Positions 16,173 through 36,516 of a stretch of DNA of 64,000 bases are shown here, in pieces. The DNA comes from Rebecca billardiae RCC1528 (taxonomy: Eukaryota > Protista > Haptophyta), in the NCBI GenBank assembly GCA_965240325.2, contig OZ251242.1, positions 496,001-560,000 of the forward strand. Direction: 5' to 3'. The notes beneath the pieces were generated by a model that made no database searches, was not told the DNA's origin, and saw only the letters and a program-made list of their open reading frames with translations. Numbering within the stretch: position 1 is the first letter of the stretch; the number at the start of each line of letters is the position of its first letter. Both the position numbers and the translations under genes were made by a program.

Positions 16173-16889
16173 AGCTGACGCAGCCTGGGGCGCGCATCTC
16201 AGCAGATGGCGTCGCCGCTGGGACGTCAGGGCCGGCGCCGCACCAGGCGGGCCGGCGGCATCAGCTACGCAGTGGCTGGCTCTGGCGGCGCGCGCGCGCG
16301 GCGCGCGCGGCGGCAGGAGCGCGAGCGCAGCAGCGCTGGCGCGGAGCGACGTGGACGCGGAGCGCGGACGCGGCAGCGCAGACGCGGAGCGACACGGACG
16401 CGGCGCGTGCGCGGGCGGTACGGCCCGGCGCAGCGCGGCACGGATGGCACGCCGGCGGCACAGACGGGCGCCATCGTGGAAGAGTCCAAGGAACAACGGA
16501 CTCGATCACTTCATTCATGGACGCCCGGATTCTCAGTTTTGAGAATCGAGAATCCGGGATCATGGGTCCGTGCGCAGCTTACCCAGGTCCGATGACATTA
16601 CCGAGTACCTGGGGGAAAGATGAGCTTACGGCGGTGCGTCGGTAACGCCTGCGATTGGCGGACGCACGGAAGCGGGGCTCAGGAAGGTTACAAGATTCCC
16701 GAGCCGGGCCGCAAAACGCCGTGTCACCCTGCGCAACCGAAAGTTGGTTGCGGCAGGAGGATTAGCTTCGCTCGTCAGAGGAGCGAGGGTCGAGATTGCC
16801 TTCGTGGGCGTCACCGACGACGCGCCCGAGGACGTGCCGGTGAGCTCTTAGCAGGGCTCGAGACGCTCGGAGCTCGCGTTTACCCAATA
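16168..16889 (+). repeat. 5' LTR (TGTTG...CAATA)
   Basis: Direct repeat of 22846-23567; ORF-track translations across both copies are identical. Confidence 0.95.
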
Positions 16890-16945
16890 TGCATGCAGCG
16901 ATCGGGAGGGATCGTACGCGCGGCGCTTTCTCATCGATCGCGCCG

Positions 16946-19507
16946 ATGAGCACGAGCGGCCGGTACTACGGCTCGGTCGACGTTGGGAGCCTCAACGACA
17001 AAGGTAATCAGCAGCGTTGGCTCGCGCAATCGGCGAGCAAGCTGGCGGCGCTACCGGCGGGGCAAGGTGCTACGATGTCCGCACTGAACGGCATCATCGT
17101 GACGCATGGCCCGAACGCGGAGCACCGCATCAACACGCTCGAGGAGTACAACTCGACGTGGGCAACTTTCAACCCATCCGCGGCGAAGATGATCAAGGTC
17201 AGTGCCGAGCGGATGGACCTGGCACGTGAGAACTACGCGCTACAGCAGCGGCTGCTCGATCATCGCCACGAGCACGAGCGCCGCGAGCACGCCGAGCGCC
17301 GGGCCGCGGCGGAACGCGCGGCGGCGGCGGCGGGGGCGAGGCAGGCGGCAAGCTACGCGCAGGCTGCCTCGGCGGGCGCGGGGAGTGGTTTAGCCACTCC
17401 GGGCGGCCCGACGGCGACCGGACCGGGTTCAGGTCCGGCGGCGGGCGGCGGATCCGGAATTTCTCCGGGTCCGGCGGCCGGCACACCCAGTCCGGGTGTG
17501 GGCACAGGCGGCGCTGCAGGTGCGCCGGCTGGGACTGACGGCGCGACGCCTGCGGGCGGCGCCGGCGTCGGCGCGGCGCCTACGGGCGGCGCCGGCGGGA
17601 TGGGTGGCGCGGCGCCCGCGGGCGGCGCTGCCGTGACGCTCGATCCGCGCGCGCGTGAGCTCTACCGCCGCGAGCGCGAGACCGAGGATCAGATGCATGA
17701 GCGGCAGGCGAGCGAGCACGCCATGCTGGACATCAAACTCCGACAGAGCGTGTTGGAGGCAGCGCCGGACGGCGACGAGGCGGACCCCGCCAAGTACGCC
17801 GGGGCGCAGTACGAGAAAGGGACGGCTTTCTTACGCACCGAGCTGCGGTCGTGGGTGACGGAGGCTGCGTGGCAGCACATCAACCGCCTCATGGAGACGC
17901 AGCCGGAGGTGCAGGAGGAGCGCGCGCGCCGGGGCGCACTTACGCCGGGGCGCGAGTTTCTGTACCTGTGGAAGACGATCCTGCGCATGCGCAAGCCCGA
18001 CGACATGCGGAAGTACATGTCGGTGCGGGCACGCTGGCATCGGACGGTCCTGCCGGACTGCGGCAAGGACGGCGTCGGCGCCCTCGAGCTCTTCCAGGTG
18101 CTACAGCACAACCACGTGCTGCTGCAGGAGCTGAGTGACGCAGCGCCAGCGGCGGAGATGCTTGCGCGGCTCATCGAGTTCATTCCGTCGGTGGGCGCGG
18201 GCATCGAGATGCGGACGCGGTACGAGTCGAAGGACTACAGGACCGTGACGAACTTTGACGTGCAGGAGCTCGTGCACGAGCTCAACGGCAAGTTCGAGGA
18301 CTGGGACTTCTCCAAGGGCAAGCGGGTTGACCGCGGCGGCCCTGGGCGCCCAGGGGCGGGTGGCCGCACGCCAGGAGGCGGCGGCGCTACCCGCGCGCAC
18401 CCAATCGACGGGCTCCGCCTGGCGCAGGCGGCGGCGGCGTCGGCGGGTGGCGGCGGCGGCGACACGACGTCGCCGGCTGGCCGTGGTGGCGGCGGCGGAG
18501 GTCGTGGCGGTGGCGGCGGCGGCACTGGCCGCGGCGCCGGCCGCGGAGGCCAGGACGACTCCGACGACGCGCACGGGCCGCGCTGCTACAAGTGCGGCGC
18601 CGTGGGGCATATCAAGCGTTACTGCCCGCAGGTGACGCAGGCTGATCGCGACTCGAACGCTGGCGATGACGCGGCGTCGACGCGGTCGGATCGCAGCCGT
18701 GGCTCACATCGGAGCGGCGGTGGCGGTGGCGGCGGCGGTGGCGGGGGCAGCACCCGCGCCGTGGTCGGGAATGGCAACGGCGGCGGCACGGTCCGCACGC
18801 AGGTCGCGTTCGCTCCCGAGCAGGGAGACGAGCCCGACGGCGCCGTTGGTGGCGACGGTGACGCTGACGCCGGAGACGGCGGCGGCGCCGGCGCCGGACT
18901 CGGCTTGGCGCCTATTGGCGCGGCTATCGGCGGCAGGGCGCAGCGCGACGAGGACATTGAGATCGTCGCGGCGCGGGCGGCCGAGGCACGCGTGGCGCCG
19001 CCGGAGGACAACACGCGGGCGTTGGTGTTTGACACTGGCGCACGGAAGAACATCGCCATGGCCGAGGATTTGACGAATCTTACCCCGGTGGACGGCGCAT
19101 GTCAGATCGAGTGGGGGAACGGTGCGCGGGAGCGGGTCACTCACCGCGGGACCCTGGTGGTCAAGCTTGCGGCGGACGACGACAGCGACAAGGTCCTCAC
19201 GCTCGAGATCGAGGCGTGGGCGTCGCGGCGCGTCACGGCGCCGCTGCTGTCGGTCGAGCACTGCGCGGACGCAGGCATCGAGTTCCACTACTCGCAGCGC
19301 GGCAACACTGCGGACTTTACGGCGCTGGGAGGCGGCGTCGTGCAGCTGCCGCGCGATTCCACGCTGCGCGCCGAGATTGTACGGCGCCAGGTGGGGCCGG
19401 ACGTCGGCGATGCGCCGGCGGAGCAGCGCGCACGGCGCAGGGCGCCAGTGCGGCGCGTGGGCGCGGGGCGGGGGCGCGTTGGCGCTGCGCCGCCCCCAAA
19501 CGCCTAA
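16946..19507 (+). CDS. gag: Copia ORF1: Gag with CCHC zinc knuckle plus aspartic protease
   Basis: CYKCGAVGHIKRYC knuckle; LVFDTGARKNI protease active site followed by IEWGNG..V..RG..LLSV. Confidence 0.9.
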   Translation: MSTSGRYYGSVDVGSLNDKGNQQRWLAQSASKLAALPAGQGATMSALNGIIVTHGPNAEHRINTLEEYNSTWATFNPSAAKMIKVSAERMDLARENYALQQRLLDHRHEHERREHAERRAAAERAAAAAGARQAASYAQAASAGAGSGLATPGGPTATGPGSGPAAGGGSGISPGPAAGTPSPGVGTGGAAGAPAGTDGATPAGGAGVGAAPTGGAGGMGGAAPAGGAAVTLDPRARELYRRERETEDQMHERQASEHAMLDIKLRQSVLEAAPDGDEADPAKYAGAQYEKGTAFLRTELRSWVTEAAWQHINRLMETQPEVQEERARRGALTPGREFLYLWKTILRMRKPDDMRKYMSVRARWHRTVLPDCGKDGVGALELFQVLQHNHVLLQELSDAAPAAEMLARLIEFIPSVGAGIEMRTRYESKDYRTVTNFDVQELVHELNGKFEDWDFSKGKRVDRGGPGRPGAGGRTPGGGGATRAHPIDGLRLAQAAAASAGGGGGDTTSPAGRGGGGGGRGGGGGGTGRGAGRGGQDDSDDAHGPRCYKCGAVGHIKRYCPQVTQADRDSNAGDDAASTRSDRSRGSHRSGGGGGGGGGGGSTRAVVGNGNGGGTVRTQVAFAPEQGDEPDGAVGGDGDADAGDGGGAGAGLGLAPIGAAIGGRAQRDEDIEIVAARAAEARVAPPEDNTRALVFDTGARKNIAMAEDLTNLTPVDGACQIEWGNGARERVTHRGTLVVKLAADDDSDKVLTLEIEAWASRRVTAPLLSVEHCADAGIEFHYSQRGNTADFTALGGGVVQLPRDSTLRAEIVRRQVGPDVGDAPAEQRARRRAPVRRVGAGRGRVGAAPPPNA

Positions 19508-22500
19508 GCCCGGAACCCGCGCAGGTGCGAGCCACAAACACAACCACTACGGTATCTGATACCACTACTACTACGGAGGCGGCGCGAGACGCTGATCCGG
19601 CGTGGTTACGCACTTGGTCGGTTCGAACGGGCACCAATGACCAACGTCTACTCGAGCGCACGCGACGCGTGGCCGAGGGGATGGAGGGGGCGAACGCGCG
19701 GCGTGAGCCGCTTGACGAGCAGTCGGCGGCGGGCATGACGCGGCGGTCGTTCGCGGACGCGATGCCGACGGCGCACTACCCTGGGCAGGTGACGCACGTC
19801 GACATCTTCTCTATGGCGCGGATCGACTTACCAGTTGGGGCCGATGGCGCACGTGGAGGGTATCCTCATGGGATCATATTCATCGATGGGCATTCACGTC
19901 GATGGCAAGTGTACGCGCTACGCAGCTTGGATGACGCCGAGGTTGGTCGGGCATTCCGCTGGTACGCGCAGTTGCTTGGAACAGGGGCCATGCACATGTC
20001 GCATTGGGTCCTGGCGTCGGGGTGTACTATGGCGCGACGCCATGTTCACACCGACGGTGGCTCGACGTTGCTGAGTACGTACGTCGAGGGTGAGCTGGCG
20101 AAGCTTGGGTTCTCGTCGACGGTCACGTCGGCGCCCGACTCGCCGAGCTCGAATGGCGTGGCGGAACGCGCTATCCGCACGCTGAAGTCGAGGCTGCGCG
20201 CCACGGTCGTTGCGCGTGGAGTCTCGAGGGTCGATTGGCACTACGCGGCGTGGCACGCATGCGCGTCGCGCAATCGACTGGCGTCACGTGGTATCATTCG
20301 TGACGATGGAGACATCGAGTGGCTCACGCCGGATGAGCTGTTCTTTGGGAAACGCCCGACGTGGAAGCATCACGTGGCGTTTGGCGCGCGCTGCCGCGTG
20401 CTGATGCTGGGCGCACGGCGCAATGCATTGGGGCAGCTGAAGCAGCGCGCACTACCCGGACGTGTCTATCTCTGGGGTGGGCACGGCGTGCAGTGGCGCG
20501 GTACATGGCGCTACGTGCTCGGGTACGTATGTCGTTTAGACGACGGACGTCTCGTTCACTCACGTGACGTACGCATCGACGAGACCGACCTGGTCGAGGG
20601 GGGGCACTCGTCGCTGGGCGCACCTGACGGTGGCGCGTACGTGGGTGATGGTGACGACGCCGCGGTAAGCGGCGGATATCGTCCAGTCGGCGGTGACGCC
20701 GACGGTGAGGACGAGGACGGCGATGGCGGCGAGACGCCAGCCGACGCCGGGAATGACGACGCGACAGAGTTCGACGTCGGGTACGACGACGACGCAGATG
20801 CGTCAACGTCGGGGCGCGGGCGCAGCAGCGTGGACGCGGGACAACGCGGGTGCAGCAGCGCGGGCGCACAGCCGTCGACGCCGACGCCGCAGGGCGGGCG
20901 TGGCGGGGCAGGCGCGTCGATGACGCAGCCGGGTCGGCAGGATCAGATACCGCCGACGGAATCACGGCGCGGGGCCGCAGCAGATGCTGGCGGGCCGCCG
21001 CGCGGCGCAGACGGTGACGACGGCGTGATCGAGGACGCGCCGCCGCCCGGCCTGGATATGGGACACGATCCGCTTCGCAGGGATCGGACGTCGCGCCGAC
21101 GGCCGCAGCTGCTTACTGCCGTCGTCAGCGCCGCGTCGGTGTTCCAGAAGATCAACGTGAAGGTGCCGACGAACTATCGCGAGGCGATGCGGTCGGCGGA
21201 GGCGCCCCAGTGGCAGGGCGCCATGCTCGAGCACTTGGAAGGTCACAAGTTGCTCGGCACCTCGGAGGAGGTGGTGGTTCCGGAGGGCACGCGGGTGTTG
21301 CCGAGCCAGTGGGTCTTTGACGTGAAGTCGAACCCGGAGGGCGAGGTGACGCGCTTCAAGGCGCGGTCGGTGCTACTGGGGAACCTACAGCGGCCGGGGA
21401 TCGACTTTCAGGAGGTCTTTGCTCCGACGATCCGGCCGGAACAAGTGCGACTACTCGTGGCGATCGCCGCTCAGCAGGCGGGCGCGAGAGTCGACTTGGG
21501 TGCAGCGTCGGTTGTGGCGCTGGGCATACTGTCGAAGGGCGACGTCAAGGACGCGTACCTCAACTCGGAGTTGAAGCCGGATGAGCGGCCTCTCTTCTCA
21601 TTCCCGCCGGGCTACGTGCCGAGCACGCAGGCGCCGCCGGGGTACAAAGTCGTGGGCCGGAGCCTGAAGGCGTATCCGGGCCTACGCCAGTCTGGGCGCG
21701 CGTGGCATCGCACGCACCGCACCCAGCTGCTCGCGCGCGGCTTCTCGGAGTGTCCGAGTGCGCCGTGCATCTACGTCAAGGAGTCGGCGCCGGGCGAGTT
21801 CATCATCGCGGGCGGCTTTGTCGACGACTTGCTGTTTCTCAACCTGACGCGCGACGCGCGCGCGGTGGAGAAGCTGGCGGCTGACCTGAAGGAGCACTAC
21901 GAGATCAAGCTGAGTGAGCGGCTCGATAAGTTCCTGGGCGCCGTGTTTGAAGTTCATGACGACGGCATCCTGATGCATCTGGGGCCGTACGTCGAGAGCG
22001 TGCTTCAGCGGTTCGGTTTGAACGCAAGCACGCCGGCGCGCACGCCGGAGCCGGCGGCGCGGGCGCAGCTGAGCGACGACGACGAGGCGTTGCTGCAGCG
22101 CGCAGAGATTGAGAACTACCAGGCGATGGTGGGATGTCTCATGTTTGCGATGGTCACGGCGCGGCCGGACATCGCGCACGCGGTGAACATGCTGACGCGA
22201 CGCATGTCATGTCCGCGGGCGGTGGATCTGGTAAGTGCGAAGCGCGTGCTGCGCTACTTACGTGGATGCCCGCGATTGGGAATCTTGTTCAAGTTTGCGA
22301 CAGATTCCGAGCACCCCGACCTACTTGCTTTCGCTGACTCCGATTGGGCAAGCAATCCGGTGGAGACCAAGGGCAGGTCGACGGGTGGATACATTGTGTT
22401 CTACAATGGGGCGCCGGTGTCGTGGCACAGCGGGCTGCAAGGTACAGTCTCGCTGAGCTCGACAGAGGCGGAGTACGTCGCGCTGAGCGATTGCTGCCGC

Positions 22501-22809
22501 GAGGTGAGCTACTTGCGGAGCATACTCGAGTCCATGCGGCAGCCGCCGCGGGACGCGACGGAGGTGCGAGAGGACAACAAGGGGGCTATCGACCTCGTGG
22601 AGAATCCTGTGCACCACAAGCGCTCGAAGCACATCGAGATCAAGCATCACTATGTGCGTGACGCGCAGGAGGGTGGCAAGGTAAAGGTGGTCAAGGTACA
22701 CACCTCACTCAACCACTCTGACATCATGACGAAGGCGACGGACGGTGCGACGTTCAAGCGGCACGTCGACGCCATCATGGTGGACCGACACCCGACGCGC
22801 GCGCGGTAA
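19495..22809 (+). CDS. pol: Copia ORF2 (-1 frame): integrase, reverse transcriptase, RNase H
   Basis: IN: HVD..FIDGHSR..HTDGG..SNGVAERAIRTL. RT: WVFDVK..RFKARSV..QRPGIDFQEVFAP, DVKDAYLN, FVDDLLF. RNase H: AFADSDWA, RSTGGY, SSTEAEY, EDNKGAI, KHIEIKHH. Confidence 0.95.
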   Translation, partial: PKRLSPEPAQVRATNTTTTVSDTTTTTEAARDADPAWLRTWSVRTGTNDQRLLERTRRVAEGMEGANARREPLDEQSAAGMTRRSFADAMPTAHYPGQVTHVDIFSMARIDLPVGADGARGGYPHGIIFIDGHSRRWQVYALRSLDDAEVGRAFRWYAQLLGTGAMHMSHWVLASGCTMARRHVHTDGGSTLLSTYVEGELAKLGFSSTVTSAPDSPSSNGVAERAIRTLKSRLRATVVARGVSRVDWHYAAWHACASRNRLASRGIIRDDGDIEWLTPDELFFGKRPTWKHHVAFGARCRVLMLGARRNALGQLKQRALPGRVYLWGGHGVQWRGTWRYVLGYVCRLDDGRLVHSRDVRIDETDLVEGGHSSLGAPDGGAYVGDGDDAAVSGGYRPVGGDADGEDEDGDGGETPADAGNDDATEFDVGYDDDADASTSGRGRSSVDAGQRGCSSAGAQPSTPTPQGGRGGAGASMTQPGRQDQIPPTESRRGAAADAGGPPRGADGDDGVIEDAPPPGLDMGHDPLRRDRTSRRRPQLLTAVVSAASVFQKINVKVPTNYREAMRSAEAPQWQGAMLEHLEGHKLLGTSEEVVVPEGTRVLPSQWVFDVKSNPEGEVTRFKARSVLLGNLQRPGIDFQEVFAPTIRPEQVRLLVAIAAQQAGARVDLGAASVVALGILSKGDVKDAYLNSELKPDERPLFSFPPGYVPSTQAPPGYKVVGRSLKAYPGLRQSGRAWHRTHRTQLLARGFSECPSAPCIYVKESAPGEFIIAGGFVDDLLFLNLTRDARAVEKLAADLKEHYEIKLSERLDKFLGAVFEVHDDGILMHLGPYVESVLQRFGLNASTPARTPEPAARAQLSDDDEALLQRAEIENYQAMVGCLMFAMVTARPDIAHAVNMLTRRMSCPRAVDLVSAKRVLRYLRGCPRLGILFKFATDSEHPDLLAFADSDWASNPVETKGRSTGGYIVFYNGAPVSWHSGLQGTVSLSSTEAEYVALSDCCREVSYLRSILESMRQPPRDATEVREDNKGAIDLVENPVHHKRSKHIEIKHHYVRDAQEGGKVKVVKVHTSLNHSDIMTKATDGATFKRHVDAIMVDRHPTRAR

Positions 22810-25315: not shown

Positions 25316-25408
<93 letters not shown>
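25316..25408. repeat. (TA)n tract
   Basis: Seen directly. Confidence 0.95.
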
Positions 25409-25755: not shown

Positions 25756-28700
25756 TCACAGCAGGGGATTGCCCTTATTCTTGTCCACCATCACACGCTG
25801 ACGCACGCGCGGAAGCATGAAGATTGCAGCAGCGATTGTGCTCACAATGCAGCAGCATGCACCAGCAGCCAGGGCAACTATCTGCATGAGCAGGAGTTGA
25901 TGATGGCCACCAGAATCCGGCAGCCGTTGGGGCAGCGGTGAGGGCGGCTCACTCAGCTGTGACGGCGGCGGTGCTTCAGGAAGATACAGTGGAAGCACGT
26001 TTTGGAAGCCATGAACACCGCCCCATATCTTGGTATCGGCCACGTTCATTTCGTGCAGCACATACATCGAGCCGACCTCGGTCGGGATGGTGCCGCTTAC
26101 ACTGTTGAAATTCAGCTCCCTGTGCGTCGCGCGGCAAGCAGCACACACGCGTGAGCATTCCCCCTCAGCAGTGACGCCGGATCGAGGAGGCGCGCCACCA
26201 CCGGTGAGACTGGCGTGCACAAGGGGAACTGGGGATGGCGCTCATGGCATGGTGCCAGCAGCTAGAGGCGGCTGGCGGGCGCACGCGCGCGTACATTTTG
26301 ATGAGGCTGCCCATCGAGCCGACCTCGGTCGGGATGGTGCCGCCTAGGTCGTTATTGCGCAAGTTCCTGTGCATCGTGCAGGCATCCGCGCACGCGCGCG
26401 AGCACAGCGCCCTCAGCAGTGACGTCGGATCGAGGAGGCGCGCCGCCGCTGGCATGCACACGGGGGGCATGGTGCCCGCAGCGATGGGCGGCTGGCGGGC
26501 GCACGCGCGCATACATCTCTGTGAGGCTGCCCATCGAGCCAACCTCTGTCGGGATGGTGCTGCCTAGACGATTGCCGGGCAAGTACCTGTCGTACATCGG
26601 GCATGCAGCCGCGCACGCGCACGAGCATCGCGCGCCCAGCAGTGACGTCGGATCGAGGAGGCGCGCCGCCGCTGGCGTGCAAAGGGGGAGGGGGGGGGGG
26701 GGCATGGCATGGTGCCCGCAGCGATGGGCGGCTGGCGGGCGCGCACGCGCGCGTACATCTCGATAAGGCTGCCCATCGAGCCGACCTCGGTCGGGATGGT
26801 GCCGCGTACACTAGTGGCCCACTCAAGGTTCCTGTGCGTCGCGCGGGCAGCAGCGCACGCACGCGAGCATGGCGCCCTCAGCGCATGGCATGGTGCCCGC
26901 AGCGATGGGCGACTGGCGGGCGCACGCGCGCATACATCTCTGTGAGGCTGCCCATCGAGCCGACCTCGGTCGGGATGGTGCCGCTTACGCTGTTGTAACC
27001 CAGGGACCTGTCGTCGCACAGGCAGCAGTGCACACACGCGAGCATGGCGCCCTCAGCAGTGACGTCTGATCGAGGCGCGCCGCCGCTGGCGCGCAAATGA
27101 GGGCGGCGTGCATGGCATGATGCCCGCAGCGAGAGGTGGCTGGCAAGCACGCGCGAGCGTACATCTGGACGAGGCTGCCCATCGAGCCGACCTCGGTCGG
27201 GATGGTGCCGCGTACACTGTTGTCACTCAGGTCCCTGTTCGTCGCGCGGGCAGCAGCGCACGCACACGAGCATGGCGCCCTCAGCAGTGACGTCGGGGCG
27301 CGCCGCCGCTGGCGCGCACATGAGGGCGGCGCGCATGGCATGATGCCAGCAGCGAGAGGCGGCTGGCGACCACGCGCGCGCTTACATCTGGACGAGGCTG
27401 CCCATCGAGCCGACCTCGGTCGGGATGGTGCTGGTTAAACTGTTATAATCAAGGCTCCTGTACGTCGCGCGGGCAGCAGTGCACGCACGCGAGCATGGCG
27501 CCCTCAGCAGTGACGTCGGGGCGCGCCGCCGCTGGCGCGCACATGAGGGCGGCGCGCATGGCATGATGCCAGCAGCGAGAGGCGGCTGGCAACCACGCAC
27601 GCATACATCTGGACGAGGCTGCCCATCGAGCCGACCTCGGTCGGGATGGTGCCGCCAAAACTCTCGCCCCAAGCGCCCGAGAGACTTCTGTGCGTCGCGC
27701 GGGCAGCAGTGCACGCGCACGAGCACCGCGCCCTCAGCAGTGACTTCGGGTCGAGGCGCGCCGCAGCCGGCGCGCACACGCGGGCGGCGCGCATCGCATG
27801 GTGCCCGCAGCGAGAGGCAACCGTTAGGCATGCACGTGCTTACATGTAAGTGAGGCTGCCCATCGAGCCGACCTCTGTCGGGATGGTGCCGCTTTTGTTG
27901 GATGTCAGCTTCCTGTGCGCGGCGCGGGCAGCAGCGCACGCGCGCGAGCACCGCGCCCTCAGCAGCGACTTCGGGTCGAGGCGCGTCGCTGCCGGCGCGC
28001 ACACGCGGGCGGCGCGCATCCCATGGTGCCCGCTCGAGAGGCGGCCGGCAGGCATGCACGTGCTTACATGTAGGTGAGGCTGCCCATCGAGCCGATCTCG
28101 GTCGGGATGGTGCCGCTTACACTGCCCGCGTGCAGGTCCCTGTGCGTCGCGCGGGCAGCAGCGCACACGAGTGAGCACTGCGCCCTCAGCAGTGACGTCC
28201 GATCGAGGAGGCGTGCCGCCGCCGGCGTGCAAAAGGGGGCGGCGCGCATGGCATGGTGCCCGCAGCGAGAGGCGGCCGGCAGGCATGCACGTGCTTACAT
28301 GTAGGCGAGGCTGCCCATCGAGCCGATCTCGGTCGGGATGGTGCCGCTGAAAGCGCCGTAATCCAGCTTCCTGTGCGTCGCGCGGGCAGCAGCACACGCG
28401 TGCAAGACGCGCCCTCAGCAGTGACGTCGGATCGAGGAGGCGCGCCGCCGCCGGCGCGCACAAGGGGGCGGCGCGCATGGCATGGTGCCCGCAGCGAGAG
28501 GCGGTCGGCGGATGCATGCGCGGGCGCACATTGAGGTGAGGCTGCCCACCGAGCTGAACTCGGTCGGGATGGTGCCGCCCATTTGCCCGCCTTGCCCATA
28601 ATACAGGTTCCTGTGCGTCGCGCGGGCAGCAGCGCACGCGCGCGAGCACCGCGCCCTCAGCAGTGACGTCGGATTGAGGCGCGCCGCCGCTGGAGCGCAC

Positions 28701-29169
28701 GTGGGGAGGAGGGGGGCGCACACACGACATGGTGCCCGCCACGATGAAAGCAGCGCGCACGCGGGGGGCTTTCAGCAATGGCAGACGATCGCGCGTACAA
28801 TTGAGTGCATGTTGCCGTGTTGGAGATACATTCTGCGAAAATCGAATTGCTTCCGTCCGTATGGGCGGCGGCGAGGCGCGCCATCGTGAGCATAGTGGCA
28901 GCCGTCAGCGCTGGTGCACAGCCGGTGCCTGCCGCGCTGGCGCAACGAATCGGCCGCGGCGCTCGGGTGCAGCAGCCCGTGGCGGGCGAGGCGGCCACAA
29001 CTAGGAGACCGAGCGCGACGGCAGCAGATACAAGGATGCCGCCGCCCGCCGCCGTCGTGTTGATCTGCTGGGGTGCGCTGCTCGCCGTGGCGATGAGGAG
29101 CGTGCCGATGGTGAAGGCTGCCACCGCCCACGGAGAGCGTGTCGCCTGGCGCGAGTCATCGAGCTTCAT
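25756..29169 (-). CDS. LRR receptor-like membrane protein, about 514 aa, 13 exons: 29169-28799, 28610-28530, 28370-28299, 28139-28068, 27912-27844, 27687-27607, 27457-27386, 27234-27163, 27007-26936, 26831-26757, 26586-26515, 26366-26295, 26119-25756
   Basis: All 12 introns are GT..AG and phase 2, and the spliced length of 1545 nt is in frame. Each internal exon encodes one plant-type LRR, xLxxNxxxGTIPTEVGSMGSLxxM. Hydrophobic N-terminus with a CxxxxxxC cap; the last exon has a Pro-rich stalk, TM (IVALAAGACCCIVSTIAAAIFML) and a short basic tail. Confidence 0.85.
26062..28740. repeat. Tandem array of about 225-bp exon+intron units (12 copies)
   Basis: Recurrent GAGGCTGCCCATCGAGCCGACCTCGGTCGGGATGGTGCC (exon) and GCCCTCAGCAGTGACGTC / CATGGTGCCCGCAGCGA (intron). 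Confidence 0.95.
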
Positions 29170-29584: not shown

Positions 29585-31306
29585 ATGTACGCGAGCCGCA
29601 TCGCCGCGCTCGAGCAGCAGCGCATGCACGAGGGCCCCGCCGGCCTGCGCGGGCTCAACGACGAGCCATGCGCGCTCTGCGCCGCGCCCGTCTTCCAGCG
29701 CGAGCGCGTGCGCGTGCCGGTGCGCGGGCTCGACGTCGACCTGCTCATTCACCGCGCGTGCTTCAAGTGCGCGGCGTGCCGCCGCCCGCTCTCCCTCGCA
29801 AAGTACGCCTGCACGCCCGCGTCGGAGGGCGCGCCGCACGTCATGTACTGCCTCGACCACGACCCCGACCGCGCGCCGGCGGCTCGGCCGGATGCGCCCG
29901 ACGACGTCGCGGAGACGGCCGGCGGGAGTGGCGCGGAGCGGGACGTGGAGGGCGGCGCGCAGCGCGTGGGCACGGCGCGCGCGCGCCAGCCAGCGCGGCG
30001 GTGCCCTCGGCTGGCCGACGCGTGGCGCTGTGCCGCGCTCGCCGCGCTGTGCGCCGCGCACACGCTGCTCGTGCGCACGGCCGCAGGAGCCGACGGTGGC
30101 GGCCCCGACGCCGCCGACACGCACGGCGGCCCTGACGGCGTCGGCGCGCACGCCGGCGGCTACCCGTTCCACCCGGCGAGCATGTGCCTCGCGATTGAGG
30201 CGCTCAAGCTCGGCGGCTCCCTCTGCGCGCTGGCGCTGCCTGCGAAGGGCGGCGCGCGCCGGCCCGCGCCGCGCGCCGCCGCGCCGCGCACGCGCGCGGC
30301 GGCGTGCGCGGCGCTCGGCGCGTGCGCGGTGGCGGGCGCCGCGCAGTGCGTGTGCGCCCTGCTCCGCTTCGCGTGCCTCGCGCGCGTCTCGGCGCCGACG
30401 TTCCGCACGCTCCTCAACGCGGACCTTCTCTTTACGACGCTGCTCGCGCGCGGCTGCGGCCGCGAGCAGCTGCGTGCGCTCTCTGCCCGCGAGCGGGGCG
30501 TGGCTGTGCTCACGGTGGTCGGCTGCGCCCTCGCGCAGCTTGACGCGCGGCAGCGGGCGCTGCCGCCCGCCTGGCTCGGTCTGCTCGTGCTCCAGGCAGC
30601 GCTGGGCAGCCTCGGCCGCGCGGCCTCGCACGCCGTGCTCCGGGCGAGCGGGCAGCGAGCACAACCGCTCGGCGCGTGGCAGCAGCGCGCGGCGCAGAGC
30701 GGCTTCGCCACGCTCGCGCTCGCGGCGTTCATCGCCGCGCGCGCGCCGGAGCTCCTCGCGAGCAGCGGCGCGTTCCTCGCCGGGCACGGCACGCGCGCGG
30801 CGCTGGCCGTGCTCGTGAGCGGCGCGCTCGCCGGCCTCGCCGCCGCGGACCCGCCGCGCACACTGCCGCCGCCCGCCGCGGAGCTCTCGATCGGCGCGGA
30901 GACGGCGCTGACAGCGCTCGCGGCGTGCGCGCTGCTCGGCGCGCGCCCCTCCGCGGGGCTCAAGCTGGGCACGGCGATGGTGGTCGGCGCTCGGGTGCTC
31001 CACGCCATGGGCGCCGCCGGCCCGTCCTCGCGCGAGACCTCCCGGCGCGTGGCGCGCGGCCGTGCGCACGGGGTGCACGTGCCGGGCGCCGCTGACGGCT
31101 CGGATGACGACGAGTCATGCGACGAGGAGTCGCCCCTCGCGCCCTCGGCCCGCGACGACGACCACGCGGCCTTCCGCGCGGGCCCCACGACGACGCCGAT
31201 GGATGCCGTGGTGATCGCCTCGCCTGGCTGCCCTGTGGCGGGCGACGACCACGCCGGCAGGCGCGGCCGAACGAAACGTCGCTCGGGCACCTGCAGGTAC
31301 CAGTAG
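29585..31306 (+). CDS. LIM-domain protein fused to a divergent SLC35A/nucleotide-sugar-transporter-like membrane domain
   Basis: CALC..HRACFKCAAC..YCLDH is a LIM pattern. YPFHPASMCLAIEALKL and ACLARVSAPTFRTLLNADLLFTTLL resemble SLC35A segments. Multiple hydrophobic helices. Confidence 0.6.
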   Translation: MYASRIAALEQQRMHEGPAGLRGLNDEPCALCAAPVFQRERVRVPVRGLDVDLLIHRACFKCAACRRPLSLAKYACTPASEGAPHVMYCLDHDPDRAPAARPDAPDDVAETAGGSGAERDVEGGAQRVGTARARQPARRCPRLADAWRCAALAALCAAHTLLVRTAAGADGGGPDAADTHGGPDGVGAHAGGYPFHPASMCLAIEALKLGGSLCALALPAKGGARRPAPRAAAPRTRAAACAALGACAVAGAAQCVCALLRFACLARVSAPTFRTLLNADLLFTTLLARGCGREQLRALSARERGVAVLTVVGCALAQLDARQRALPPAWLGLLVLQAALGSLGRAASHAVLRASGQRAQPLGAWQQRAAQSGFATLALAAFIAARAPELLASSGAFLAGHGTRAALAVLVSGALAGLAAADPPRTLPPPAAELSIGAETALTALAACALLGARPSAGLKLGTAMVVGARVLHAMGAAGPSSRETSRRVARGRAHGVHVPGAADGSDDDESCDEESPLAPSARDDDHAAFRAGPTTTPMDAVVIASPGCPVAGDDHAGRRGRTKRRSGTCRYQ

Positions 31307-35013: not shown

Positions 35014-36516
35014 CTACACGGCAGCGGGCGCAGCGGCGGCGGAGGCTCCAGCACCCGCTGCCTGTGCGCACCACTCGATGCAATGGGGCTTGTGCACCTT
35101 CCACGAGCTGCGCAGGTGCTCACGCGAGCAGAAGACCGCCACGTGGCACCGCTCGCACTTCTTCAGACCACGGCCTGTCCGTCCGCAGGCGATGCAGCAC
35201 TGCGAGGCCACCTCGCGCTCTCCAGCTGTCGCAGCCAGCGCATCACTCGTTCGATCTCTGAGGTCGGGATCGAGCTCTTGGGCACGGCGCAGCAGCCGCG
35301 CGCCGTCCTCCACGTCACGCTCCACTCCCACGCCGTGTAGCATACACACTCCCAGCGTAGTGTGTGCAAGTGCGCTCCCGCCATCAGTAGCCAGGCGGTA
35401 CAAGCGCACCGCCTCGCCCAAATCCTGCTGCACACCGTGGCCGCGCATGTAGCAATGCCCCAGCTCGTGCTGCGCTTCAGCAACGCCCTGCTCGGCCGCC
35501 AGCCGGTACCAGCGCGCTGCCTCGCCCCAATCCTGCTGCACAGCCTCGCCTTGCGCGTAGCATCGGCCCAGCAGGCACTGCGCTTCAGCAACGCCCTGCT
35601 CGGCCGCCAGCCGGAACAAGCGCACCGCCTCGCCCCAATCCTGCTGCGCACCCTCGCCACGCGCGTAGCATCGGCCCAGAGCGCACTGCGCTTCAGCAAC
35701 GCCCTGCTCGGCCGCCAGCCGGAACAAGCGTGCCGCCTCGCCCCAATCCTGCTGCACACCCGCGCCTTCCGCGTAGAATGCACCGAGAAGGCACTGCGCT
35801 GCAGATTCGCCCTGATCGGCCGCCAGCCGGGACCAGCGCGCCGCCTCGCCATTATCCTGCTGCACACCATCGCCACGCGCGTAGCACCCGCCCAGAGCGC
35901 ACTGCGCTTCAGCAACGCCCTGCTCGGCCGCCAGCCGGAACAAGCGTGCCGCCTCGCCCCAATCCGGCTGCACACTCGTGCCTTCTGAGTAGCACGCGCC
36001 CAGGTTGTACTGCGCTCCAGCATAGCCCTGCTCGGCCGCCAGCCGGTACCAGCGCATTGCCTCGCCCCAATCCTGCTGCACACCCTCGCCCTCTGCGTAG
36101 CACGCGCCCAGAGCGCACTGCGCTTCGGCATCTCCCTGCTCGGCAGCCAGCCGGTACCAGCGCACGGCCTCGCCCCAATCCTGCTGCACACCCCTGCCTT
36201 GCGCGTAGCATCGGCCCAGCAGGCACTGCGCGGCAGCATAGCCCTGCTCGGCCGCCAGCCGGTACCAGTGCGCGGCTGCCTCGACGTCCACAGGCTGACC
36301 AAGCTCGCCGGCCAAGCAAATGCTGCCCATCCTCGCCTGCGCTTCGGCAAAGCCGCGCTCGGCGGCGAGGGCGTACAGGCGAAAGGCTTCGCGCTCGTCC
36401 TGCGCGATGCCGTCGCCATCCTCAGCCCGCCGCGCCAGGAGGAACGTCGCACGCGCGTCGCCGCGCCCCGACTTGCGCCAGAGGAGCCCGACCGCCGCGG
36501 AGGCGTTCGCCGCCAT
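35014..36516 (-). CDS. Sel1-like repeat protein with C-terminal MYND zinc finger
   Basis: About 10 x 36-aa AxRWYRLAAEQGxAxAQxxLGxCYxxGxGVxQD repeats; CIAC..CERC..FCSREH..WKVHKPHC. Confidence 0.9.
   Translation of the reverse strand: MAANASAAVGLLWRKSGRGDARATFLLARRAEDGDGIAQDEREAFRLYALAAERGFAEAQARMGSICLAGELGQPVDVEAAAHWYRLAAEQGYAAAQCLLGRCYAQGRGVQQDWGEAVRWYRLAAEQGDAEAQCALGACYAEGEGVQQDWGEAMRWYRLAAEQGYAGAQYNLGACYSEGTSVQPDWGEAARLFRLAAEQGVAEAQCALGGCYARGDGVQQDNGEAARWSRLAADQGESAAQCLLGAFYAEGAGVQQDWGEAARLFRLAAEQGVAEAQCALGRCYARGEGAQQDWGEAVRLFRLAAEQGVAEAQCLLGRCYAQGEAVQQDWGEAARWYRLAAEQGVAEAQHELGHCYMRGHGVQQDLGEAVRLYRLATDGGSALAHTTLGVCMLHGVGVERDVEDGARLLRRAQELDPDLRDRTSDALAATAGEREVASQCCIACGRTGRGLKKCERCHVAVFCSREHLRSSWKVHKPHCIEWCAQAAGAGASAAAAPAAV

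Follow-up and report, generated by a model that had tools for sequence, protein, structure and literature searches.

Does a gene in which each leucine-rich repeat (LRR) sits on its own exon, so that any of these exons could be left out without loss of the reading frame, provide a repertoire of receptors within the organism, or does its exon layout reflect the way in which the gene grew? This question is raised by an LRR gene on the minus strand (positions 25756 to 29169) of a 64-kb stretch of contig OZ251242.1 of the haptophyte Rebecca billardiae RCC1528, the whole of which is called the window here. We consider it quite probable, as judged from the genomic sequence, that the gene encodes, in the germline, an LRR membrane protein that lacks a kinase and is laid out like the plant receptor-like proteins, with a repeat domain built as an array. 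This reading is carried by a gene model, a tandem array of exon-plus-intron units, a trace of recombination between these units and a sharply localised excess of divergence, all of which are seen directly. Splicing of the gene is probably constitutive, and the diversity of the repeats would be evolutionary rather than generated within an individual.

The gene structure was obtained with a scripted model on the reverse complement of the window, and the gene is known from DNA alone. Thirteen exons join into a spliced coding sequence of 1545 nt, which translates into 514 amino acids (aa) without any internal stop. All twelve introns are of the GT-AG type and interrupt the frame in phase 2, i.e. 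after the second codon base, and they measure between 104 and 188 nt. The junction codon is AT/G at every intron except one, where it is AT/A. The rebuilt model matches exactly the eleven internal exons (81, 72, 72, 69, 81, 72, 72, 72, 75, 72 and 72 nt, bounded by phase-2 GT-AG introns) that an earlier note on this DNA had listed; the twelve variable peptides of that note and its almost invariant block (TIPTE-GSMGSL) all reappear in the spliced translations, and its description of one LRR per symmetric phase-2 exon is confirmed by the gene model. Eight units are exactly 24 residues long when the split junction codon is counted. The four exons of other length (69, 75, 81 and 81 nt) are all multiples of three, while the lengths of the introns are unconstrained. 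In the order of transcription, the features of the gene are the following:

28799 to 29169, minus strand: exon 1, 371 nt, starting at the first ATG past an in-frame stop
26066 to 28700, minus strand: tandem array of ~12 exon-plus-intron units that begins midway in intron 1 and extends to the last repeat's scaffold
28530 to 28610, minus strand: LRR exon 2, 81 nt, patch three codons longer than the standard
28299 to 28370, minus strand: LRR exon 3, 72 nt
28068 to 28139, minus strand: LRR exon 4, 72 nt
27844 to 27912, minus strand: LRR exon 5, 69 nt, patch one codon shorter
27607 to 27687, minus strand: LRR exon 6, 81 nt, first base A, so that the junction codon is Ile and not Met
27386 to 27457, minus strand: LRR exon 7, 72 nt
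27163 to 27234, minus strand: LRR exon 8, 72 nt
26936 to 27007, minus strand: LRR exon 9, 72 nt
26832 to 26935, minus strand: intron 9, 104 nt, chimeric
26757 to 26831, minus strand: LRR exon 10, 75 nt, patch one codon longer
26515 to 26586, minus strand: LRR exon 11, 72 nt
26295 to 26366, minus strand: LRR exon 12, 72 nt
25756 to 26119, minus strand: last exon, 364 nt including the stop codon, with the 12th repeat, a degenerate 13th repeat, a Pro-rich stalk, the membrane helix and a basic tail
25801 to 25902, minus strand: predicted membrane helix, aa 467-500 (Kyte-Doolittle 2.34 over 19 residues)

Tandem Repeats Finder detects a period of 223 bp in the gene, the unit being an exon plus an intron. 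When both strands of the window are searched, a 38-nt exon core and a 20-nt intron motif are each found 11 times, compared to 0 and 0.05 expected, respectively; every copy of either lies on the minus strand and inside the LRR gene. The eleven symmetric exons all descend from a single duplicated unit, and their symmetry therefore does not amount to eleven independent coincidences. Intron 1 resembles the other introns in its 3′ half (p-distance, i.e. proportion of differing sites, 0.06-0.18) and is unique in its 5′ half, and at the other end a degenerate 13th repeat follows the 12th with no intron between them. The introns group by neighbourhood (3-5, 6-8 and 9/11). Intron 9, which carries a deletion of ~50 nt, has a 5′ half at a p-distance of 0.02 from intron 11 and a 3′ half at 0.04 from introns 6 and 7. 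This chimera directly records an unequal exchange between LRR units. The earlier note had the array diversified by exon shuffling, and growth unit by unit with recombination between units is indeed borne out by the clustering of neighbours and the chimeric intron 9. The search for orphan cassettes that it proposed, carried out with the exon core and the intron motif on both strands, yielded no orphan, inverted or intronic LRR cassette in the 64-kb window. An introner or transposon origin of the introns was rejected because the intron motif is absent from the rest of the window. Intron 10 has a peculiarity of its own, a run of G on the plus strand at 26680-26700 (a C-run in the intron RNA) that is seen in this intron only; it is also mutated in the otherwise best-conserved intron block, which contains CTGAG.

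The copies have not diverged evenly along their length. For this comparison the patch was defined as the first 24-33 nt of each exon (LRR positions 5-12) and the scaffold as GTIPTEVGSMGSL. The mean pairwise identity by column is mostly 0.73-0.94 in the introns, 0.91-1.00 in the scaffold and 0.48 in the patch. Taken together, scaffold and introns are ~83-85% alike between units, and the patch differs 2-7 times more than the introns. Among the eight 72-nt units, from which the p-distance figures were taken, the introns differ by 0.174 and the scaffold by 0.154 at synonymous sites (pS) and by 0.067 at nonsynonymous sites (pN). Silent sites of the scaffold and introns have thus diverged to about the same extent, which means that the introns are young and not constrained. 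In the patch, pN reaches 0.49-0.58 and pS 0.50-0.66. Patch divergence exceeds intron divergence in 28 out of 28 unit pairs with a ratio of 1.2-6.9, and in 24 of them the excess is significant (one-sided Fisher P<0.05), although the pairs are not independent of each other in either count. The youngest pair of units differs by 6% in the intron and by 42% in the patch. Since relaxed constraint alone cannot exceed the neutral rate, something more must act on the patch.

The base composition at third codon positions (GC3) is 0.97 in the scaffold, 0.65 in the patch and 0.63-0.74 in the unique exons of the gene, while the introns have 73% GC. In the patch, the conserved Leu6 is encoded by CTG, CTT, TTG and CTC; the scaffold Leu is CTC in ten units and CTT in one. 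This difference in GC3 between scaffold and patch could be the signature of a GC-biased gene conversion that is limited to the homogenised parts. Single 72-nt exons contain a strong internal contrast in codon usage, with unpreferred codons such as GTA, AGT, TAT and TTA in the patch.

The intron falls within codon 4 in the LRR numbering used here (L1 x x L4 x L6 x x N9 x L11), and positions 5, 7 and 8 are the most variable. In the established LRR structure these three positions lie on the concave sheet. The earlier note had mapped the variable residues to the concave xxLxLxx face, which holds for positions 5, 7 and 8 but does not account for the considerable variation and the length changes at the loop of positions 9-12. 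Several units lack Asn9, and the patches of four units are altered in length by +3, +3, +1 and -1 residues; the variation at positions 9-12 touches the loop and the plant-specific second sheet, beyond the concave face. Hypervariability does not extend to positions 2-3 at the exon's 3′ end, where the residues (VQ three times, TY, TE/IE) go with the duplication blocks.

The twelve aligned exon translations yield the consensus xLxxNSxxGTIPTEVGSMGSLxx, in which L, T, I, P, T, E, S and L are invariant; the reference consensus for plant-specific (PS) LRRs is LxxLxLxxNxL(S/T)GxIPxxLGxLxx with a period of 24 residues. A search of 177,635 PDB sequences with the repeat profile gave 15 matches, all 15 of them plant LRR receptor ectodomains. 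The best was RGI3 (E 4e-10), followed by HAESA, BIR3, FLS2, TDR, ERL2, PEPR1 and SERK1. Because the profile matches ectodomains of this kind only, it places the repeats in the plant-specific-type class of 24-residue LRRs. Pfam applied to single 23-aa units, which are too short to call, reported LRR_1 for one of them (E 0.13). The spliced protein can be aligned locally to database LRR proteins matched by its last exon over ~300 aa with 33-41% identity, and two of these proteins carry LRR_8 and LRR_14; among the look-alikes that were traced, one cluster is a diatom LRR kinase and two proteins come from contigs of prokaryotic or phage-like character. An exhaustive protein search with the last exon returned 2,237 proteins, of which the best 150 match mainly through the LRR part. 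There is no close match among these 150, nor any relative of the stalk, the helix or the tail. Metagenome contigs were scanned twice, first with a close match to the exon core and next with a pattern for TIPTExGSMGSL that allowed for codon degeneracy, and there were 0 matches in each case.

At the C-terminal end, the membrane helix is preceded by the Pro-rich stalk and followed by an 18-residue basic tail. Pfam detects no domain in the first or the last exon, neither a kinase nor ROC-COR. The closest look-alikes of the last exon according to a protein language model are the plant receptor-like proteins RLP51, RLP12 and EIX2 (score 0.90), a lead only, with few shared features. At the N-terminal end, exon 1 displays a weak (aa 14-31) and a strong (aa 38-68) hydrophobic stretch in the hydropathy plot and a Cys-x6-Cys motif at aa 114-121, directly ahead of the first repeat. 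Plant LRR N-caps have a Cys pair in this place as well. The order of signal, LRRs, stalk, membrane helix and short tail put forward earlier can therefore be retained for the LRRs, the Pro-rich stalk, the C-terminal helix and the 18-residue tail, but the signal is uncertain because there are two hydrophobic stretches.

Several points weigh against the interpretation as a plant-type receptor with a diversified surface. The domain calls rest on the repeat profile of the twelve exon translations and on local alignments, and exon 1 is matched by neither Pfam nor Atlas. The two N-terminal hydrophobic stretches leave the topology unsettled. Should the first be a cleaved signal and the second a membrane span, the LRRs would be cytosolic. 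On reading the sequence of exon 1, no in-frame intron that removes the second stretch was found, and the ATG frame alone is open. From the basic tail, following the positive-inside rule, and from the Cys-x6-Cys cap we infer that the LRR domain faces outward. With respect to the patch, silent differences are raised there as well, so that a classical dN/dS>1 is not shown. Given this excess at silent sites and the low GC3 of the patch, fast adaptive change cannot be distinguished from old patches lying beside converted flanks. The data fit a situation in which old patches have been kept apart by selection while intron and scaffold were homogenised by GC-biased conversion or unequal crossing-over. 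Very rapid turnover of the patch after recent duplication also fits, and a single locus does not separate the two readings.

We therefore favour the following course of events for a receptor-like protein of this kind. Tandem duplication and unequal recombination of a ~223-bp unit, composed of a 72-nt exon and an intron, would have built the repeat domain. Since LRR position 4 has its codon split by the intron, every new copy should be symmetric and in phase 2 from the start. Selection would hold the convex scaffold (GTIPTEVGSMGSL) near-identical, and it would keep, or make, positions 5-12 distinct in each repeat, which might provide each turn of the solenoid with a surface of its own. The resulting protein would be expected to bind an external ligand and to signal through a partner.

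The one-repeat-per-exon design is real, but brown algae, plants and vertebrate hormone receptors already provide cases of it. The closest parallel to the layout is found in the brown-algal ROCO genes, where one LRR is encoded per 72-nt phase-2 exon and where exon shuffling, positively selected sites on the concave face and annotated splice variants have been described (PMC3341825, PMC11378527); the earlier note had pointed to the shuffling. The LRR-ROCO genes of Ectocarpus and Saccharina resemble the present gene in their 24-residue LRRs, in the tandem duplication and shuffling of the exons and in having variable residues on the presumed binding face, and they have been proposed to be fast-evolving recognition receptors. 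However, their products are cytosolic LRR-ROC-COR GTPases, whereas here ROC-COR is absent and a stalk, a membrane helix and a short tail are found instead. The introns of the present gene also contain none of the inactivated or inverted LRR exons present in introns of the brown-algal genes. Moreover, the brown-algal exon starts with GxxP and ends after NxLx (PMC3341825), while in our gene the intron splits the codon of position 4 of LxxLxL. This different position of the intron within the repeat suggests that the one-LRR-per-exon layout arose independently of that in brown-algal ROCO.

With the plant LRR receptor-like proteins and kinases (RGI3, HAESA, FLS2, BIR3 and SERK1 among them) the protein shares the class of its repeats, the Cys pair before the first repeat and the order of LRR domain, juxtamembrane stretch and single helix, and its short tail is like that of the receptor-like proteins. 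It differs from them in its identity of only 33-41% to any database LRR protein and in the lack of an LRRNT_2 match. In addition, its scaffold is unusually uniform and has Met where the plant repeats have Leu, and its LRR array, unlike theirs, is a young tandem repeat that includes the introns. Plant SERK genes tend to place protein domains on separate exons, and a variant of Medicago SERK3 skips the exon of the first LRR (PMC3061892). The introns of gonadotrophin-receptor genes are likewise all in phase 2 (PMC11378527), yet the vertebrate receptors LHR, FSHR and TSHR have LRRs of another class, old and diverged exons and introns, a seven-helix receptor part and no hypervariable patch. Lamprey VLR and insect Dscam are alike solely in the idea of modular cassettes that can be combined. 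A VLR locus consists of an incomplete germline gene flanked by banks of cassettes, while the gene described here is complete and there are no such banks in the 64 kb. Dscam uses clusters of mutually exclusive exons with pairing between docking and selector sequences, whereas no convincing complementarity or covariation was seen in our introns. The genome paper of Diacronema lutheri, a GC-rich haptophyte (73.25% GC), does not mention LRR genes (PMC8379373).

What, then, of a repertoire made by splicing? According to this explanation, put forward in the earlier note and proposed elsewhere for the ROCO genes of Ectocarpus, different symmetric LRR exons would be skipped to give many receptor isoforms from a single gene, which we regard as unlikely here. 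It is true that any subset of the eleven exons retains both the frame and the register of the LRRs, that near-identical introns and splice sites could loosen the choice of exons, and that precedents exist in the brown-algal ROCO splice variants, which differ in LRR content (PMC11378527), and in the reported MtSERK3 variant that lacks an LRR exon (PMC3061892). However, that any exon can be skipped in frame follows from the origin of the array in one duplicated unit. The symmetry is an automatic by-product of this duplication and no evidence of its use. Docking or selector complementarity was not found in the introns, whose inverted repeats are short, GC-rich and weak, and the consensus fold of ten introns owes to covariation only -0.43 of its -40.6 kcal/mol. 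A Dscam-like docking system or conserved intron RNA structure accordingly appears unlikely: the GC-rich stems do fold, with negligible covariation. Programmed diversification at this locus thus appears distinctly improbable. We give equally little credence to the wider proposal that regulated exon skipping and frequent unequal recombination together provide a surface-receptor repertoire at the level of populations and cells. If true, regulated skipping would be the haptophyte cell-surface counterpart of what has been proposed for the brown-algal ROCO genes.

It is very improbable that the gene is a silent or decaying duplicate with an untranscribed array. Such a view could draw on the N-terminal exon, which is not recognised, and on the public protein sets, in which identity does not surpass 41% in the LRR part and the stalk, helix and tail find no counterpart among the best 150 of the 2,237 proteins. 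It is difficult to reconcile, however, with 1545 nt that are open across 13 exons and with 24 canonical splice sites out of 24. The four exon indels are all in frame while the lengths of the introns drift freely, and scaffold pN lies well below pS, which together argues that the reading frame of the LRR gene is under selection.

Somatic or templated diversification of the 5′ patch, by VLR-like cassette insertion or by a targeted mutator, would account for a divergence that is confined to 24-33 nt and includes silent sites, a pattern not expected if positive selection acted on the amino acids only. We nevertheless consider it extremely improbable, as the germline gene is complete and spliceable in contrast to a VLR locus, orphan or inverted cassettes are absent from both strands of the 64 kb, and the patch differences between close units span all base types with no adenine-specific pattern. 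Old patches beside sequence homogenised by conversion offer a simpler account of the same divergence, in line with the GC3 values and the recombinant intron 9. Adenine-directed mutagenesis like that of diversity-generating retroelements was ruled out for the same lack of adenine specificity among the patch substitutions.

The window is very GC-rich, with 60-87% GC in 2-kb bins. Within it lies a perfect (AT)46 microsatellite (25316-25408), ~350 nt downstream of the LRR stop codon. On the other side, a spacer of 415 nt that is richer in AT separates the LRR gene from a divergent open reading frame (ORF) of 573 aa on the plus strand (29585-31306), which has a weak, sub-threshold match to a LIM domain (E 0.003). 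Further away, a 500-aa ORF on the minus strand (35014-36516) has a MYND zinc finger at its C-terminal end and ten Sel1 repeats (Pfam E 3e-75); most of the database proteins resembling it are Sel1 fusions from metagenomes. On the plus strand, two long ORFs of 872 and 1236 aa overlap each other (16889-22809), ~3 kb past the 3′ end of the LRR gene, where a copia-type retroelement had been noted at the first reading of the sequence.

The locus adds an example and no mechanism to what is known of LRR genes. It is a clean example of how an LRR domain grows: an exon-plus-intron unit is duplicated, its copies recombine with one another, and the variable patch has sharp limits. The host belongs to the most GC-rich kinds of eukaryotic genome, and the contrast of a saturated patch of low GC3 with homogenised flanks at a GC3 of 0.97 could serve the study of GC-biased gene conversion. 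The ways in which haptophyte-type algae recognise viruses, bacteria, mates or surfaces are poorly understood, and membrane LRR proteins with variable surfaces specific to each repeat are reasonable candidates for such recognition.

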